Assembly: GCA_020137815.1 (NCBI GenBank)
Contig: CM035361.1
Span: 5,270,001-5,334,000, forward strand
Source: Hormiphora californensis
Taxonomy: Eukaryota > Animalia > Ctenophora
DNA length: 64,000 nt
Reading direction: 5' to 3'
The notes beneath the pieces are model-generated. The model did not search any database and was not told where the DNA came from. It worked only from the letters and a program-made list of their open reading frames with translations. A program made the translations under genes and the position numbers. This document shows positions 4,787-59,306 of the stretch, piece by piece; the first letter of the stretch is position 1; the number at the start of each line of letters is the position of its first letter.

Positions 4787-7700
4787 TTATTCCTTGGTCT
4801 CTGGGACAGGGGCCAGGTCGACTTCCACAGATTTAACTTTCCAGATTTCCTCAGCGTATTGCCTGGGGAGTTAAGAAGGGGGTTGGAAAATTATTTAATA
4901 AGGAAAATAGTGGTTGAAAGATTGATAAATAGAATTCGGGAACGAAGGGCATAATAAAACCTCTGTCCTCTACTGCTTCATTTGTTCTTGTAACTTGGGA
5001 TGAGAAAGAACAAAACGTTTTAGTTCTGTCTCATTATTAGTAAAACCAAAACAATCAATACTCACGTGATGGTCCTATCACTGGTAAACTTCCCGCTGCC
5101 AGCAATGTTCAGTAGACATTTCTCAGTCCATTGAACCCAAGTCCATGTAAAGCTCGCTCACTTTCTCCTGCTCAGTGACGTAGGCAGCGAAATCAGCAAT
5201 AACACAAAACCTGTGAGGAGAGGATAGGAGAGAGGGATGGTTTGAAGTGCTAATAAAAGTCAAAACTGGACTGGAGGAGTCAGTTACTAAAGTTACGGTT
5301 CGGGTTAGATTTAGTAACAACTACCAGTACCAGTGCTGAGTAAATGTTATAGCTGTGTCTATCTGTACCTGTCATTACTAATCAATTAATCAAATAATTA
5401 ATTAATTAATTACCTGTCATTACTAATGAGACCATCCACGAAACCCTCAAACTTGTGAGGCTCAGAGGAGTTGAAGAATCCAGTTTTAATTTGGTTGAAA
5501 GCAAGTTGTAGTTCAGGAAGGTTAGCTAGGAATCTGGGGAGGGGGGTTGAGATATTAATATAATGGTGAGGTTTGGGGGGGGGGATATGGTGAGGTTAGC
5601 TAGGAATCTGGGGGGGGTATGGTGAGGTTAGCTAGGAATCTGGGGGGGTGAGATATGGTGAGGTTTGGTGAGGTTAGGGTTGAGATATAATGGTGAGGTT
5701 TGGGGTGAGATATGGTGAGGTTTGGGGTGAGATATGGTGAGGTTAGGGGTGAGATATGGTGAGGTTAGGGGTGGTGATATGGTGAGGTTTAGGGTGAGAT
5801 ATGGTGAGGTTAGGGGTGAGATATGGTGAGGTTAGGGGTGAGATATGATGAGGTTTGGTGTGAGATATGATGAGGTTTGGGGTGAGATATGGTGAGGTTG
5901 GGGGTGAGATATAATGGTGAGGTTAGGGGTGAGATATGGTGAGGTTAGGGGTGAGATATGGTGAGGTTAGGGGTGAGATATGGTGAGGTTAGGGGGTGAG
6001 ATATGGTGAGGTTAGGGGGTGAGATATGGTGAGGTTAGGGGTGAGATATGGTGAGGTTAGGGGTGAGATATGGTGAGGTTAGGGGTGAGATATGGGGGTG
6101 AGATATAGTGAGGTTAGGGGTGAGATATGGTGAGGTTTGGAGTGAGATATGGTGAGGTTAGGGGTGAGATATGGTGAGGTTAGGGGTGAGATATGGTGAG
6201 GTTAGGGGTGAGATATGGTGAGGTTAGGAGTGAGATATGGTGAGGTTAGGGGTGAGATATGGTGAGGTTTGGAGTGAGATATGGTGAGGTTAGGGGGGAG
6301 ATATGGTGAGGTTAGGGGGAGACATGGTGAGGTTTGGGATTCAGATATGGTGAGGTTGGGGGGAAATTGATACATCGAGGACATTTATACTCATTTTGTT
6401 TAGAAATGTAGGGCATAACGTGTGCTCACTGCTCAGATCGGGTCGGCGCCGCCAGACACTGACATAACAACTCAACAAAAACATATCTCAGGTACTTACT
6501 TGCGAGTATCATATCCGTCTCTCCACAACTTTTCCACATCAGCAACTCTCATGCCGAAGATGAACATGTTTTCAATACCACATTCCTCTGACATCTCAAC
6601 ATTTGCACCATCAAGTGTTCCGATTGTAAGGGCACCGTTTAACTAAGTGGGAGGGGAGGTTTAGATTGTAATCGAATTCTATGCCCATGCCATTACTCCC
6701 TTGGGATTTCCGGCTAACGCTGTGTTAGAGTGTTCAAGTGATCCAAATAATTGATAGAATCATGGAACTCCTAAGAATTCCTACGAAGTATGTGATTTCA
6801 GGACCACCCAACGACCTGCCTCCCGTTGAAAAATCCGATTATCAGGCACCAGCTGATAAGATTTTCTTCCCACCCGCGCGGCAAACGCGCACAAGTCTTT
6901 AACTTTGTGTCATTGCGCGCTACACCCGAACTGTGTGAAGCTCCCTGTACTGTGTTCTGAAGCTGCAGTTTGTGTTACGTCTGTGTGGGCGAAATTCTGT
7001 GGGATGAACACGTACATTATATGTGACAATTATACTTCCTCTAGATGCGAGTATGTATGGGGGAGAGACGTATTGTTAAGTAGGCATGAGGGGAGTGAGA
7101 GAGAGGAATGGTTAAGTAGGGAGAGAGACACATGAGAAAGTAGGGACAGTAACCAGGGAGAGAGGGACAGAGAAAGAGACGTATGGTAACCAAAGTAGGG
7201 AGGACTCTCCATCTTAAGAAAGTTCGAGAAGTAATTGTACGAGTGTGGACTGCATGTTGATGAAATTAATGAAATTGTTCTCTGCTGCAGGACCAGTGAC
7301 TCCAATCTAACCAATTGAATATTACATCCAGTCCCAAACCCAATTCGAAGTTTCATTTATCTGCCAAACCGGTCATACTACAGGACACGAGATACCGGTT
7401 GTCTTCTAAGTTCTAATATAAGTTCTAATAAAACCCTTCTCTTAACTTTAAAAAAAGGTGCCGTAGTAAGGGTCGATCAGCCCGAACCACATACCATTCC
7501 TGCTCAAATATCATTACTGAATAGTATTCATACCAGGAACCGACCGAATCAGGAAATACTGGTCCCTGATTGGCTGATAACCAGTCACGTGACCTAAATA
7601 ACGAGTTCTGATTGGCTGTTTACTTAATTCGGTCGGTTCCTGCTGAATAGTATTCATACCATGAACTTCATATTTCCTGTTCCAGATGCCTCTGTTCCAG

Positions 7701-10700
7701 CGAGAGAGATCTGCTCGCTAAGGTCTGCTGCCGGCATTATCACTTCAGCCAGGGAACACTGGGGGGAAGAAAGGGTGTAAAAGTAGGGAGGAAAAAGTGG
7801 TAGGAATAGGAGAAAATAAAAGGATGGTTTGGGAGGGAAAGTGGTAGAATTAGGGGAGAAAAAAAAAGAAAGGTTTGGGAGGGAAAGTGGTAGAAATAGG
7901 GGAGAAAAAAGAAAGGTTTGGGAGGGAAAGTGGTAGAAATAGGGGAGAAGGAAGGAAGGAAGGATATAAATAGTAGTCAAGGATGTTCTTGAATGTTCGC
8001 TTCGGATATAAGTGGTAAGAATTTTAGTAAGGAGAGAGAGGCAAAGATTCTAGAAGTAATAACGCTAGGAATTCTCTCTCTCTCGGGGAAAGATAGATGT
8101 TATAAAGCACACTTCTCTCCGGCCAATTTAATATTCAAAGGTTCTCTTACGAATATTCTACATAATTCTTTGAACATGATATCTGTTCGAACACAACCAC
8201 GATTCCTTAGTAAACGTGATGAATGGTTATCCGGTTATCCTGGTTTAATTTCGGGTCAAATCCAGTATTTCTATTCTCTTCTCTACCTAATTCTTGTACA
8301 TGTATTTCATTACTGAATTATCTTACCCGGTAGTTAGATAGGAATACCACTTTTATCTTACCCGGTAGTTAGATAAGAATACCACTTTTATCTTACCCTG
8401 TAGTTAGATAGGAATACCACTTTGAGCCTATCCTTCATCATTGGATCGTTGTTAACTACATCGGCTACGTGACATATCAGGGATATGGTCTGTTTAGCTG
8501 TGTGGTATCCTGGCGCTGCCTGAGGGGAGATATGGTCTGTTTAGCTGTGTGGTATCCTGGCGCTGCCTGAGGGGAGATATGGTCTGTTTAGCAGTGTGGT
8601 ATCCTGGCGCTGCCTGAGGGGAGATATGGTCTGTTTAACTGTGTGGTATCCTGGCGCTGCCTGAGGGGAGATATGGTCTGTTTAGCTGTGTGGTATCCTG
8701 GCGCTGCCTGAGGGGAGATATGGTCTGTTTAGCTGTGTGGTATCCTGGCGCTGCCTGAGGGGAGATATGGTCTGTTTAGCTGTGTGGTATCCTGGCGCTG
8801 CCTGAGGGGAGATATGGTCTGTTTAGCTGTGTGGTATCCTGGCGCTGCCTGAGGGGAGATATGGTCTGTTTAGCTGTGTGGTATCCTGGCGCTGCCTGAG
8901 GGGAGATATGGTCTGTTTAGCTGTGTGGTATCCTGGCGCTGCCTGAGGGGAGATATGGTCTGTTTAGCTGTGTGGTATCCTGGCGCTGCCTGAGGGGAGA
9001 TATGGTCTGTTTAGCAGTATGGTATCCTGGCGCTGCCTGAGGGGAGATATGGTCTGTTTAGCAGTGTGGTATCCTGGCGCTGCCTGAGGGGAGATATGGT
9101 CTGTTTAGCAGTGTGGTATCCTGGCGCTGCCTGAGGGGAGATATGGTCTGTTTAGCTGTGTGGTATCCTGGCGCTGCCTGAGGGGAGATATGGTCTGTTT
9201 AGCTGTGTGGTATCCTGGCGCTGCCTGAGGGGAGATATGGTCTGTTTAGCTGTGTGGTATCCTGGCGCTGCCTGAGGGGAGATATGGTCTGTTTAGCTGT
9301 GTGGTATCCTGGCGCTGCCTGAGGGGAGATATGGTCTGTTTAGCTGTGTGGTATCCTGGCGCTGCCTGAGGGGAGATATGGTCTGTTTAGCTGTGTGGTA
9401 TCCTGGCGCTGCCTGAGGGGAGATATGGTCTGTTTAGCTGTGTGGTATCCTGGCGCTGCCTGAGGGGAGATATGGTCTGTTTAGCTGTGTGGTATCCTGG
9501 CGCTGCCTGAGGGGAGATATGGTCTGTTTAGCAGTGTGGTATCCTGGCGCTGCCTGAGGGGAGATATGGTCTGTTTAGCTGTGTGGTATCCTGGCGCTGC
9601 CTGAGGGGAGATATGGTCTGTTTAGCTGTGTGGTATCCTGGCGCTGCCTGAGGGGAGATATGGTCTGTTTAGCTGTGTGGTATCCTGGCGCTGCCTGAGG
9701 GGAGATATGGTCTGTTTAGCTGTGTGGTATCCTTAATCCTGGTGCTGCCTGAGGGGAGATATGGTCTGTTTAGCTGTGTGGTATCCTGGCGCTGCCTGAG
9801 GGGAGATATGGTCTGTTTAGCTGTGTGGTATCCTGGCGCTGCCTGAGGGGAGATATGGTCTGTTTAGCTGTGTGGTATCCTGGCGCTGCCTGAGGGGAGA
9901 TATGGTCTGTTTAGCTGTGTGGTATCCTGGCGCTGCCTGAGGGGAGATATGGTCTGTTTAGCAGTGTGGTATCCTGGCGCTGCCTGAGGGGAGATATGGT
10001 CTGTTTAGCTGTGTGGTATCCTGGCGCTGCCTGAGGGGGGATATGGTCTGTTTAGCAGTGTGGTATCCTGGCGCTGCCTGAGGGGAGATATGGTCTGTTT
10101 AGCAGTGTGGTATCCTGGCGCTGCCTGAGGGGAGATATGGTCTGTTTAGCTGTGTGGTATCCTGGCGCTGCCTGAGGGGAGATATGGTCTGTTTAGCAGT
10201 GTGGTATCCTGGCGCTGCCTGAGGGGAGATATGGGGCATAAAGGCTGCCTGAGGGGGAATGAAGATTGAAGGCTTCCTGAGGGGGGATATGGGGGTTAAA
10301 GAAAGAGAGAAGAGCTGCCTGAGGGGGAATGAAGATTGAAGGCTGCCTGAGGGAAGATAGGAGTGAAGCTGAGAAAATCCTAGTACAATTTAGGAATGGG
10401 CTAGGAATGCTAAACACTGGAATATGGCACGGTAATATAATTACAGTCTCCAGAGGACAAAAGGTGTACAGTGCAGTACAACACTAATGAGATATCTTTG
10501 GAGAACAGAGAGGAATTTGACGCTACATTTACTGCAGCTAAATGCGATCTAGAAAGATGTACACATTCTGGAAAGATGTCTATTCTCTAGAAAGTTCTAT
10601 TATATGTTCATTAGCGTGCACTGTGCAATGAATCTTAACAAGCTAGATCTGTCAGAAAAATCTAGTTAGACTAACATGGACCACCACTGAGAGAGAGCAT

Positions 10701-13700
10701 CGGCTTCGACAGAAAGATTCGAGCCGCAAAGGGAGTTATTAATAAATATATGTTCCAGAAAGAGAGAATCCCAATTCTCTGCTATCACACAAACATGACA
10801 AAGTTAAATATAATATATATTGACGGGTGACAAGTCCTGAGTTCACTAAAACTTTGCAGTCGTTAATATGACAAAACAAATATCTCTCTCCCAGGAAATA
10901 CTGGTCCCTGATTGGCTGATAACCAGTCACGTGACCTAAATAAAGAGTTCTGATTGGTTGTTTACTTGTTTAGGTCGGTTCCTGCTCTCTCCCTTACCTT
11001 TCCACCGAAGAAGACGGTCCTGGGTACGAAGTCTCCGTTAGGATTTGACCTGATCCTGTTGTAAAGGGTAATGACATGCAGCAGGTTCATAGTCTGTCTC
11101 TTGTACTCGTGTATACGTTTCACCTTTTAGAGGGAGAGAGGTTAGAAATCAGAATGTACTAGTGGATCTACATAATTCTGTGTGTTTGGGAGAGACATGG
11201 GGGTATAACTTGTGTCTTGTATACACTGTGTAACTATCAGAGTTATGGTGGCATGAACATAAAAGGTATAAACATCTTCCAGAATCAGGAACCGACCGAA
11301 TCAGGAAATACTGGTCCCTGATTGGCTGATAACCAGTCACGTGACCTAAATAACGAGTTCTGATTGATTGTTTACTTGTTTCGGTCGGTTCCTGCCCAGA
11401 ATCTAACAGGAAGGGGCGAAGTGTATACTTGGTAGAGTGTGCTGTGTGTATGACCGTGTGGGTATGAACGGAGAGCTAGGAAGTGCAAAACAAAGACCCC
11501 GGTACCCATGAGGTATGGGCAATACGTGGTCCTATCCTTGGTAATGAAATTACCCCTCCGCGAAAGCTATAATATGCAATAATAGGGGTGACTTTGTAAC
11601 CAACCATTTTCCTATTCGCTGTCATATATAGTTTCAAACTTTCGTCTTTCATCAAACTACAACGTAAAAATATTTCTTGAAAAACGAACCTGGATGTCAA
11701 AGAGACTACCAGTGTTTAACTCAATCCCGTATTGGTTGAACACATACTGTGCCAACTTTCTCTTGTTCTCTTGTTTCGTCTTGAAGATCTCCTGTTTTTG
11801 AAGAGATTATGAGATTACATGGTTTGATTGTTATGTTATAGTCCTCCTAGTTACTTGCGAAAAGTGGGTCGAGCTAGGCAAGGTTTGAGGTGCTCGAGAA
11901 CACGTAGCAGGAGGATGCTGAATACGAATAATACATGAGGAACAGTTATTCATCTGTGAATGAGCTGTATGTATGATTGTCTGTCTGTGTGTCACAGTTA
12001 TTATGTATACCTGAAAGAAAGATTTGTCTGTGTGTCTGTGTGTGTCTGTGTGTCTGTGTGTGGTTGTGCGTGTGTGTGTCTGTGTGTCTGTGTGTGGTTG
12101 TGTGTGTGTGTGTCTGTGTGTGGTTGTGTCTGTGTCTCTGTGTGTCTGTGTGTGTGGTTGTGCATGTGACGTCACAGTACCTGTAAGAAAGACTTGTCTG
12201 TGTGTGTGTCACAGTACCTATAAGAAAGATTTGTCTGTGTGTCACAGTACCTGTGTCTCTGTGTGTCTGTGTGTGTGGTTGTGCATGTGACGTCACAGTA
12301 CCTGTAGGAAGGACTTATCTCCCACGAATTCCCTCAGTTTGGTCAACTGCGACAGTTCCTTCACCCATCCCGCACCTACAATGAGGCCGGGGATTAAAAC
12401 AAACTCTTAACTTGGCCATTAAATTTATGGCGTATAATATTATTATATTATTATTATTATTATATTATATATATTATATATATTATTATTATATTATAAT
12501 ATGTGCAGTCGGACCCCCAAAGATAATAATCACCTATTTTCTCCGTGATAAGATGAGAGAGTGAGGGGTTACATAGGACCAGCCACCTCCTTGGTGTAAT
12601 ACCATTAGTTTTGTTTTGGAATTTATCAGGGGTCATCTGGTAGAAGTCACAGAACCTTAGGGAGAGATTTGGGTTAAACATTGTTAAAATCATGTAAATA
12701 ACTAATCATATACATCAGTAATCAATAACTAATTACTAACTGAGTATTATATGTACTTATTTCTTAATTAATAAATATGGATTAATAATATTAGTTAAGA
12801 AATAATGAATTAATTCTTCTTACAGAGAAGTGGTTAGTAGACCACTGTGGATTGCTGCTACACCGTTAACCGTGTGACTACTAACCACACTCAGATACGC
12901 CATATTGATCCTCTTTTCACCTTGAGAGAGAAATATGCGATAATATTAATTGTTTGAGAGAAATAGGAGAAATAGTGCCTGGTAGTCATGGGGTGGGTCA
13001 GAATGTCACCTTCATAGAGAGATTACAAAAAAAGAAGAAAATAGGTTTATTGTTCAGTTTATTTCCTCCGAAAAGAACAATGCCCCCTTTGTTCATCTTC
13101 GGGTCAATGACTTGCAAGAGGTGCAGAAATTGACTTTGTTCGCTTCCTATACTGATCAAAAAACTTATCCAACTACCCAGCGGCCATATCTTATTCACTA
13201 CCCTCCTGGACGTGCTGGACAATTTATCATCCAACACTCACCACACTCATCATATATAGTTATCTAAGTACTCACCACACTAATCATCTAATTATCTAAT
13301 TACTCACCACACTCCTCGACAACACTCATCCTCCTAACTCTGTCCTCATCTCCAGGGAATGCAGCCCTCACTTTCTCCAGATGATGATGGTTTATCTGGT
13401 AGATGATGTCCAGATGCCGAGGCAACACTGAAACAAGTAAACAACCAATCAGAACTCGTTATTTAGGTCACGTGACTGGTTATCAGCCAATCAGGGACCA
13501 GTATTTCCTGATTCGGTCCGTTCCTGGTTTTTGATCTACCGAACCCTCACATCGAGCACTCGTTATGAGAATGCGATGTGAGCCACATGCACACAATATT
13601 ATTTCTGTTTCTGGGGATTTAGTAGTTTGTTCTGTTTTTCTGTAATTTCTGTTTCTGTTTTTTTTCTCTCACCGTGTTCAAGCATAGCAACAGGCCACCG

Positions 13701-16700
13701 TTCCAGGGCCTCAGGTAGAATTGTGTGGTTGGTATAGGCAAAGGTCTCCCTACAAATCTTCCACGCCTGTTACGGGGGAGAAATAATAATTGGACTTTGA
13801 TAATTGGAGCCACAATTAGTTATCCGTTTTATTGTGTACCTACCGTATCCCACTCAATTCCTTCATCGTCCATGAGGATTCTAAGGAGCTCAGGGACAGC
13901 CAGAGAGGGGTGTGTGTCGTTCAGTTGAATGGCCACCTGGGGGTCGGGGATGTTAGAGAGATGTAGGGGAGGGTAGGGAGAGAGAGAGAGATGTTAGAGA
14001 GATGTAGGGAGAGAGAGGGAGGGAGAGAGAGAGAGAGAGATGTAGGGGGAGGTAGGGAGAGAGGGGGAGGGGGAGGTACGTTATTACATTAGTGCTGCAA
14101 GAAGCAGTAAAACAATTTTACTTTGAATATGATAAATTTTAGGCCTACTACCCATGATAACTTCATCTTCCCTTTTATTTCATTTTCAAGGAAACATTAT
14201 TTCATAACTCATTTTAGAGGAAAACGGGGGGAAAACACATCACGGAAAATGAGCTAAATTAAATTTCCCACTGCAAGTACTGGGACACAGATCACGCACA
14301 GATCACGCACACACACACTTTTCCGGTACATTCAAGAAAAAAGGAATACAACTAGAAGAAGGATAATTTTCAGAAATTCAACTCAAAAAACTTCAAAACT
14401 TCATAGTTGTACCTTATCAGGGAAATCGGCATACATTTCCAGTGCATTTGTAGGTGGAACAGTCTTGTTTGTCTTAAAACGCCGGATGATATCAACCAGT
14501 GTTGCTGCAACCATGAAGTACTCCTGCTTTAGACGGAGTTCCTTTCCTGAGGGAGATTAGGATGTTTTATGAAGGAGTAATGGCGTGTTTTATGAAGGAG
14601 TAATGGCGTGTTTTATGAAGGAGCAATGGTGTGTTTTATGAAGGAGTAATGGTGTGTTTTATGAAGGAGCAAACCTTCAAAGATGTTATCGTTGGGGTAC
14701 AAGACTCGGCTGATATTCTCGGCGTTGTTCCTATCCAAGACAGCATCAATGTAGTTTCCATGATTAACTAAATTATTAATTAATTAAAGGAATAAACATT
14801 TGATTTGCTTCACAATAACATATCGGGGATGCAATATATCAAACTCACAGTAGGAAAGATCGAAATCCTTGGGAGATTTGGCTGACCACAGTCTCAGAGT
14901 GTTAACAGTGTTGGTCTTGTACCCAGGTATCGGTGTATCGTATGGCATGGCTATGACGGTGGCATAATCAGTCCATTGGACCTTACCTGTAATAATGGGT
15001 TACAAAGGGTTACTTGTGCAGTTACACAAAGGGTTACATGTACAGTAGGTATATTTTAGTAATACTTAAAAAAATAGGTGGGGAATAGTCTACAGTTTGA
15101 ACCAGGGCACGTTAATTGGTAGAGTGCCAATCGGCGGAATTGCTGTCCGTCAGTCAAAGTTCAGATCAAAACGTTGGTTGTGAGAACTGAGCACCCAGAG
15201 ACATTACCAGGAACCGACCGAATTAAGTAAACAGCCAATCAGAACTCGTTATTTAGATCACGTGACTGGTTATCAGCCAATCAGGGACCAGTATTTCCTG
15301 ATTCGGTCGGTTCCTGCTACTTACCATTGACATGCTGAACCCGGCCATAGAAGTGGACTGGGATGGTATACTCAGGTCGTGCCTTCTCCCAGGGATTTCC
15401 AAATGTTAGCCAGCCATCCGGCTTTTCAACCTAAATAGTTTGAGGGTTTGAAACTGGGTCTGTATATAGTTGGGATATAGTTTGAGGGTTTGAAACTGGG
15501 TCTGTAAATAGTTATGGGTTCGAAACTGGGTCTTCCGATGTGATAAAACCCCAAACCCGTATCAGGAGGACAAGTGAAGAACGAACTAGATCGCTACAGA
15601 GAGTACGTTGTCCCATGTTTCATCTTAGTTTTCATAAGGAGGTGCCGCGTTTCCGCAGCACCCGCTACCACAAATTACACGCCCAGACTATGAACATTTG
15701 TCACAACTGCAAGCTTCATCGTACCGGTGTGCAATGGTACGACTCCACTCGGGGGTTGACCCTGAAAGATCGGCCAGATCCCCGGCGTCAGGTAAGTATG
15801 AGGATGAGAGGCAAGGAGGGTGATTTTAAATTTCAGAATAGAAACAAACCTTGTGTTTTAGTAGAGACACAGAACACTAATTAGTTTGCATGTTACCTGG
15901 TTGCAATTTGAGATGGCCTGGTTAAACAGACCGTACTCGTAACGGATGCCGTAGCCATATGCCGGATATCCTAGTGTAGCAAGGGAATCTGAAATGTAGA
16001 ACATATGTAAATATAGAATATAAAATGTAGAATATAGCGCTGGTTAGGGCCGATGTAACAGGAAGACAATAATAATAGGGAGAAAGGGAGAGATGTTTGG
16101 AGTAACGATATTGAGGAAGTGTGGGAGAGAGAGAGAGAAAGAGAGAGCGAGAAATAATATAAAGCCCCACGAAAGTGCTGGCAAGGGCCTCTGATCAGTG
16201 ATCGGCTACAACTTCTAACTAACCTAGGAAGCAGGCAGCAAGACGTCCAAGCTGCCCCTATTCTAACTAACCTAGGAAGCAGGCAGCAAGACGTCCAAGC
16301 TGCCCCCATTCTAACTAACCTAGGAAGCAGGCAGCAAGACGTCCAAGACCACCGTTTCCCAGCCCTGCGTCAGGTTCCTCGCTCTGCACATCCTCCATAT
16401 CTAATCCTAGTTGGTAGAGAGCCTCGTCACACGCACCCTGTAATATTAGTACACATCGTCACACGTTGTTTTGTTCAAGCGAAAGGAGGTCTAGACTCTA
16501 GCTAGGCAAGTCACACGCACCCCGAATCCCGAACAGATATAATTATTAGAGTTAGTCAACCTTTGACACACACAATATTCTAACTAACCACTTACTATTA
16601 AATTAGCCACTGATTATTTAATTAACCACTATTCCTAAATTTATAATTAACCAATAGTTATGTAATTAACCAGTAATTATGTAATCACTAATTACCTCAA

Positions 16701-35575: not shown

Positions 35576-46406
<10,831 letters not shown>

Positions 46407-54077: not shown

Positions 54078-59306
<5,229 letters not shown>

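Follow-up and report, generated by a model that had tools for sequence, protein, structure and literature searches.

A tandem array of near-identical 3' splice sites preceding exon 18 of the glycogen phosphorylase gene of the ctenophore Hormiphora californensis

In this work, we examine the glycogen phosphorylase gene of the ctenophore Hormiphora californensis, and more particularly its intron 17, in which the 3' splice site (acceptor) of exon 18 is repeated many times over. The gene lies on the minus strand of a stretch of 64,000 nucleotides (assembly GCA_020137815.1, contig CM035361.1, positions 5,270,001 to 5,334,000 of the forward strand), which we call the window and whose numbering is used for the coordinates below. 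A sequence-only reading of this window had proposed that about 37 near-identical decoy acceptors stand in front of exon 18, that correct splicing would then call for strict exon definition or heavy nonsense-mediated decay, and that the length of the array could tune the expression of the enzyme.

Searched in all six frames with Pfam PF00343 and NCBIfam TIGR02093, the complete assembly (110.7 Mb, 45 contigs) gave 14 exon matches to the former and 18 to the latter, all of them at this single glycogen phosphorylase locus, and no retrocopy or second phosphorylase locus. The open frames and the AG and GT candidates served to set up, by coordinates, a model of 23 exons, and the frame is intact, with conserved residues, in 22 of the 23 exons; the remaining one, exon 22, is taken up below. 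Exon 18 (AAPGYH...SNYR, 41 amino acids) matches positions 490-536 of PF00343 and 580-627 of TIGR02093, and it aligns end to end with residues 609-649 of liver glycogen phosphorylase in solved structures (E=1e-12). The exon number given by the sequence-only reading (18 of 23) and its upstream 5' splice site (donor) at 10998 both match this gene model. The features on which the argument depends are the following, a slash marking the splice junction here and throughout.

10998..11123, minus strand: exon 17, ending ...FFGGK/gtaaggga, with the donor that faces the acceptor array.
10248..10353, minus strand: four older degenerate acceptor copies with the core CCCTCAG/G(C or A)AGC, arranged as a twice-repeated two-unit block (Tandem Repeats Finder row 10214-10301, period 30, 76% matches).
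10228..10234, minus strand: CCATATC direct repeat, intron copy (ancestral acceptor -16 to -10), bounding the array upstream.
8520..10234, minus strand: 36 decoy units, 47 bp long except for one of 54 bp; every unit has a CTAAA branch-like motif, the C-rich tract TCTCCCCTC, CAG and the first 38 nt of exon 18.
8540..8544, minus strand: CTAAA, resembling a branch site, at 21-25 nt before the real acceptor; every unit repeats it.
8397..8519, minus strand: exon 18, 123 nt, phase 0 at both ends, whose first 38 nt belong to the last unit of the array.
8482..8488, minus strand: CCATATC direct repeat, exon copy, at +32 to +38 of the exon; downstream boundary of the array.
8327..8396, minus strand: two extra 35-bp copies of the end of exon 18 and its donor (ACTACCGG/GTAAGATA), in intron 18.
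7660..7758, minus strand: exon 19 (CSLAEV...GNMKFM), the partner of the exon-18 donor.

Tandem Repeats Finder describes positions 8482-10234 as a tandem array of period 47, with 98% matches, no indels and 37.1 copies, a number that is read from one composite assembly. With its head-to-tail units in the range of about 10-100 bp, the array is a minisatellite. On the minus strand, each unit is made of the last 9 nt of the intron (TCCCCTCAG) followed by the first 38 nt of exon 18. That the unit joins the acceptor to the start of the exon had been seen correctly from the sequence, although with 37 exon nucleotides instead of 38; the last 7 of these 38 bases are a repeat that is also present in the intron. 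Splitting the array at the unit starts gives 37 of them, namely 36 decoy acceptors, with their first 'exon' bases at 10218, 10171 and so on down to 8566, and one real acceptor at 8519. The observation of an array that copies an acceptor is confirmed, with a count of 36 decoys plus the real site. Among the 36 decoy units, 25 are identical, 7 differ by one A>T change and the other 4 are each unique; a 7-nt insertion gives one of these 4 its length of 54 bp. The CAG/G is kept in every decoy, within the same 16-nt junction at no more than 2 mismatches. Past its first 38 nt, the real exon 18 runs on into CCTGATATG, whereas the decoys run into the TCCCCTCAG of the next unit, and 8519 is the sole open acceptor; only the last copy extends into the exon, as had been claimed. 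The array contains 173 AG and a single GT (at 8639, in one variant unit), so that no internal exon can be defined inside it. It brings intron 17 to 2478 nt, against 779 nt if it is removed. The donor of exon 18 is indeed triplicated as well, with 3.0 copies of a 35-bp unit at 8318-8423 (95% matches).

One may ask whether the assembly can be trusted here. It was built from noisy PacBio continuous long reads with wtdbg2, arrow and pilon (PMC8527503), and coding frameshifts are seen elsewhere in it, so the array could be real but much shorter, or misplaced, if assembly and polishing of the long reads had inflated it. The variant units, however, are scattered irregularly along the array, without any period, and the window contains no N, which speaks against a simple assembly loop. 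In addition, both flanks of the array pass cleanly into unique sequence, its 1.7 kb are easily spanned by a single read, and the window holds many other arrays of the same kind. An artefact of this sort is, in our opinion, very improbable.

The boundaries of the array tell how it may have been formed. In the ancestral sequence, CCATATC occurs twice, 47 nt apart, once in the intron and once in the exon. The array extends exactly between its two boundary copies of this motif, and the extra copies are all on the intron side. Boundaries of this kind, set by a motif whose ancestral copies were one unit apart, are what slippage, or unequal exchange, between short direct repeats classically leaves behind. 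When the whole assembly is searched with a 141-bp query and a 17-nt junction pattern, the unit matches only its own locus; the array is thus neither a mobile element nor a dispersed satellite. The four older degenerate copies that lie upstream indicate that the junction had been duplicated in earlier rounds, which the gene survived.

The use of a decoy is predicted to be destructive. Each of the 36 decoys, together with one older copy, was read in the frame of exon 17, through the exon-18 donor into exon 19, up to the first stop. In silico, this stop comes within 57 codons in all cases, usually at codon 40, and the two extra donors at 8362 and 8327 lead to an immediate stop. The period of 47 is not a multiple of 3, and the expectation of the sequence-only reading that any upstream acceptor would truncate the protein holds for all of them. 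A protein word search for transcript-derived fragments of exon 18 gave none from this species, with one unrelated match of 64 amino acids only, and metagenome contigs, scanned for the exact sequence of the joined exons 17 and 18, gave no match. UPF1, the core helicase of nonsense-mediated decay (NMD), is encoded in the genome; the UPF2 domain search gave no match, but the control search was equally blank, so that this result is uninformative.

Trans-spliced leaders are carried by at least 56% of the mRNAs in this species (PMC8527503), and unpaired acceptors might in principle take such a leader and start 5'-truncated messages. All frames through the array are closed, however, and the lack of any retrocopy or second phosphorylase locus, noted above, also stands against this idea. 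Furthermore, an upstream donor in the same intron favours cis-splicing, as is known from nematodes, and intron 17 does possess a normal donor upstream of the array. A role of the decoys as leader acceptors is thus extremely improbable.

The strength of the decoys was considered against 93 introns, placed by an automatic procedure between profile matches that follow one another in phosphorylase, CAD, ten myosins and the CCT chaperonins (for this survey, the Pfam dynein model was too short to serve). This procedure recovered 12 of the 12 phosphorylase introns that were attempted. With a weight matrix drawn from the same introns, the exon 18 acceptor scores 12.6 bits, which places it at the 75th percentile of the 93 real acceptors and gives it the highest score among the 12 phosphorylase acceptors scored. 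In the interval from -40 to -8 of real acceptors (n=92), CTAAT and CTAAC are enriched 5-7 fold, YTAAY is found in 41% against a background of 10%, and CTAAA in 10% against 4%, while the position of the branch A clusters between -16 and -26. In each unit of the array, a CTAAA lies at -25..-21, and it comes from the Ala-Lys codons (GCT AAA CAG) of the exon part of the preceding unit. The AG found 3-4 nt after this CTAAA is too near to be used, given the known spacing between branch site and AG. With a branch-site-like CTAAA and a 3' splice site at the 75th percentile, the decoys look competent.

The ancestral branch region of the real acceptor, CTTTATG, was lost after the first duplication, which means that the real acceptor would rely on the exon-derived CTAAA that is common to every decoy. 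Owing to this shared motif, the upstream side would make either all 37 sites competent or not a single one of units 2-37. The real site could then be distinguished only by downstream information, that is, by the rest of exon 18, with its purine-rich GAUGAAGGA run, and by the donor 123 nt away. RNA pairing of the acceptor unit (8482-10234) with the donor unit (8318-8423) through 9 bp, GGAUACCAC with GUGGUAUUC, was also considered; the fold has z=-1.7, chance alone would give such a match in about 15% of cases, and the idea was set aside. The predicted fold nests three 9-bp helices across exon 18.

How often splice junctions are duplicated was surveyed with 16-mer probes, a probe being duplicated when its own intron holds a copy with at most 2 mismatches. 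In other genes (81 introns of 16 conserved genes), 2 of 162 junctions are duplicated against 41 of 432 probes of intron interiors (Fisher p=1e-4; the interior probes of one intron are not independent, so this p-value and those below are approximate), and probes 30 nt inside exons are duplicated in 1 of 162 cases. Junction duplications are thus depleted about 8-fold relative to intron interiors, which argues that decoy copies are usually costly and selected against. In phosphorylase, 6 of 44 junction 16-mers are duplicated, against 30 of 122 interior probes taken 30-90 nt inside its introns. This makes it an outlier with respect to the other genes (6/44 against 2/162, p=0.001), and the excess persists without the two exon-18 junctions (p=0.02). 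We rejected the idea that junctions attract tandem repeats, since junction probes are duplicated less than interiors in phosphorylase and far less in the other genes. Tandem repeats with a period of at least 10 make up 31% of the phosphorylase gene, mostly through its two large arrays, compared with 11.6% of the remainder of the window and 10.3% of the other gene loci (191 kb); for the genome, a value of 13% has been reported (PMC8527503).

These data bear on whether the array could be a selected regulator, i.e. a brake on phosphorylase that depends on copy number and acts through unproductive splicing and NMD, or through decoys that hold the exon 17 donor and so lead to intron retention. The CAG/G is intact in the four older copies as well as in all 36 decoys, the donor-bearing variable number tandem repeat (VNTR) of human ABCA7 alters splicing with its length (PMC5954066), and decoy splice sites are able to drive intron retention (PMC6097662, PMC7373989). 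However, the uniformity of the units is what is expected of a young array without selection, the 8-fold depletion in other genes goes against a benefit of such copies, and the units do not have the 5' splice site that published decoy exons require. A selected regulator is therefore quite improbable. More generally, the sequence reasoning of the earlier reading was correct and, as far as sequence goes, its worry about the decoys is justified; the slippage signature, the tandem repeats that make up about 10% of gene loci, and the depletion of junction duplications speak against the array having been designed for a role. Two bolder ideas, which we find doubtful, are that each unit might divert more exon 17 donors to unproductive splicing or intron retention, in which case the array would be a brake of variable length, or that ctenophore spliceosomes might follow a strict 'acceptor nearest next donor' rule. 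If they do follow such a rule, arrays of this kind would be harmless.

The state of the gene itself has then to be considered. Exon 22 carries a +1 frameshift in the assembly (window 5123-5145, minus strand): its first part (23 amino acids, ...SELYMD) aligns to phosphorylase residues 771-793, and its second part (22 amino acids, QWTEK...), read one frame on, to residues 796-817. The gap between these parts is of exactly two residues, which points to one extra base in the G-run at about 5137-5139. The shifted frame is open through exon 23 to the proper stop, so that the shift is either very recent or an error. The assembly has a single strong CCT-epsilon locus (C3:9163701-9165293, minus strand), which is intronless; its coding sequence passes through three frames in succession, for a summed score of 838 bits with the epsilon model. 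Its segments cover model positions 40-151, 156-434 and 434-528, which amounts to two single-base frame changes in an essential gene. These changes are probably assembly errors, and they call for caution with frame-based calls in this assembly. Since single-base errors do occur in it, they are a likely cause of the exon 22 shift as well, and an assembly error is clearly more likely there than a null allele.

The frameshift would nevertheless fit a damaged or weak allele, in which most transcripts of this haplotype splice to a decoy, the first transcribed or any other, and little enzyme is made. Its recent origin, together with cover from the second haplotype of a highly heterozygous animal, could let such an allele persist; indeed, the reference assembly is a composite of both haplotypes, with a heterozygosity of 3.2% and many intronic indels (PMC8527503). 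The decoys equal the real site in strength and upstream context, the short introns of this genome suggest pairing across the intron, and phosphorylase has an excess of duplicated junctions. Against this, every other exon is intact and well conserved, the older degenerate copies mean that the junction has long been burdened with decoys, and the three frames of CCT-epsilon make an assembly error a likely origin of the shift in exon 22. We consider a damaged allele unlikely.

On balance, we favour with moderate confidence the reading that the array is a young, locus-specific minisatellite, born across the intron 17/exon 18 junction and tolerated by the gene, which is non-adaptive and is no device. 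Slippage or unequal exchange between the two CCATATC copies would have duplicated the 47 nt, and the array would then have expanded to 37 copies while remaining 98% uniform. The gene would still work because the last copy alone is followed by more exon, with the GAUGAAGGA purine run, and by a 5' splice site within 123 nt; as the array offers no more than one GT, this last copy would be favoured when sites pair across the exon. The transcripts spliced to a decoy would be cleared by NMD, and the net effect of the array would be neutral to mildly harmful.

Several points weigh against this reading. The median length of the inferred introns of this genome is 242 nt, and with such short introns splicing may be mostly intron-defined, which would favour the first decoy over the last copy. 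The last few decoys would give exons of 170-310 nt, and these would not be clearly excluded by pairing across the exon. The excess of duplicated junctions in phosphorylase is only weakly explained by chance and tolerance, and the frameshift of exon 22 leaves room for a damaged allele.

Relative to the sequence-only reading, what is new here is the CCATATC boundaries, the genome-wide uniqueness of the unit, the apparent competence of the decoys, the survey of junction depletion, the position of phosphorylase as an outlier and the frameshift of exon 22. With 36 strong 3' splice site copies before an essential exon of a single-copy metabolic gene, the locus is a natural experiment in splice-site competition. 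If the last site wins, this would mean pairing across the exon; if the first site wins, pairing across the intron. This provides a test set for splice choice in a lineage that branches near the base of the animals, and the chief value of the array is that nature has already set up, in a ctenophore, a test of how splice sites are chosen. The survey also gives a first estimate for this genome, with local duplication at about 10% of near-junction intron positions against about 1% of splice junctions, and this gap between junctions and interiors is a measure of the usual cost of decoy splice sites.

The count of 6 of 44 duplicated junctions in phosphorylase comprises the donors of exons 4, 15, 18 and 19 and the acceptors of exons 18 and 21. 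The donors of exons 4, 12 and 15 each precede two or more tandem copies of the exon end with its GT, all of them intronic. The corresponding features are as follows.

16213-16347, minus strand: duplicated donor of exon 4, 48 bp x 2.8 (16-mer probe).
13236-13313, minus strand: duplicated donor of exon 12, 32-bp unit (Tandem Repeats Finder only, outside the 6/44 count).
12171-12302, minus strand: duplicated donor of exon 15, 37-bp unit (16-mer probe).
5574-5665, minus strand: three copies of the exon 21 acceptor (ccccag/ATTCCTAGCTAACCT), including two in tandem upstream (16-mer probe).

The copies of the exon 21 acceptor merge into a 22-bp x 32 array made from part of the same unit (5574-6362), which constitutes a second, smaller case of decoy acceptors. 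A dispersed satellite family that would unite the 47-bp and 22-bp arrays through a common CCATATCTC was considered and rejected, as both arrays are local. Directly after the donor of exon 19 lies a miniature inverted-repeat transposable element (MITE; window 7524-7660, minus strand) with the ends CAGGAACCGACCGAAT and ATTCGGTCGGTTCCTG. It is flanked by a direct duplication of 17 nt (GTATGAATACTATTCAG) that starts at the GT of the donor, so that the insertion of the MITE gave exon 19 a second donor copy, 126 nt downstream of the first. The same MITE is present at other places of the window, such as those near 10890-10980, 13460 and 36330.

Repeats are also found elsewhere in the gene and in the window. 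Intron 8 of phosphorylase (128 nt, 14547-14674) is nearly all made of a 23-bp x 4.7 repeat, and only 5 nt on the donor side and 16 nt on the acceptor side lie outside it. At 36412-36582, on the minus strand, there is a perfect 43-bp x 4 array whose unit consists of an ATG, 9 codons and GTGAGT, and which looks like an exon with a start codon copied four times together with its donor. Further large minisatellites are found at 37763-38923 (61 bp x 19) and 57174-58230 (41 bp x 25.8, with a GTGAGT in each unit). In a myosin gene (C3:7946061-7946521), two adjacent exons both match positions 105-167 of the head domain, and they are probably mutually exclusive alternative exons.

Among the known systems, a first comparison is with tandem duplications that span or create splice sites, with which the 2009 work of Gao and Lynch is said to be grouped. 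In the intragenic tandem duplications of potato RdRp (PMC4974935) and of Drosophila (PMC2891723), as here, a duplication of splice signals is hidden by splicing and leaves the protein unchanged, the duplicates bear premature stops, and NMD has been invoked. These cases involve one or a few copies that create or shift an intron, whereas here an existing intron is lengthened by 36 copies. The array likewise does not follow the Rogers model, in which a duplicated exonic AGGT makes a new intron: the junction that was duplicated already existed, and intron 17 has only become longer, at an unchanged position (GGK/AAPGY). Decoy exons (Parra et al. 2018, PMC6097662; PMC7373989) are similar in that intronic sites are able to engage real sites without productive splicing. 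The published ones are, however, cryptic exons with both 3' and 5' sites, and the array falls outside this definition because its units carry no 5' site, with one GT in 1.7 kb. NAGNAG tandem acceptors are also adjacent duplicated acceptors, but they are spaced by 3 nt, remain in frame and give protein isoforms, while in the array the spacing is of 47 nt and all the alternatives are out of frame or stopped.

The VNTR in intron 18 of human ABCA7 is the nearest known parallel; it has 12-427 copies of a 25-bp unit, the first two bases of which are the donor of exon 18 (De Roeck et al. 2018, PMC5954066). When the donor of the next unit is used, 25 nt are added and a premature stop follows, and splicing changes with the length of the array (PMC5954066). 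In both systems, a minisatellite abuts an exon, the canonical splice site lies in its terminal unit and is repeated in each of the others, and the site of a neighbouring unit leads to a premature stop, which in the comb jelly is predicted in silico for all the decoys. They differ in that the ABCA7 array is on the donor side, has a unit without exon sequence and has measured effects, whereas that of the comb jelly is on the acceptor side and brings, with each unit, 38 coding nucleotides and a branch-like motif. By its anatomy, the comb-jelly array is the acceptor-side counterpart of the ABCA7 VNTR.

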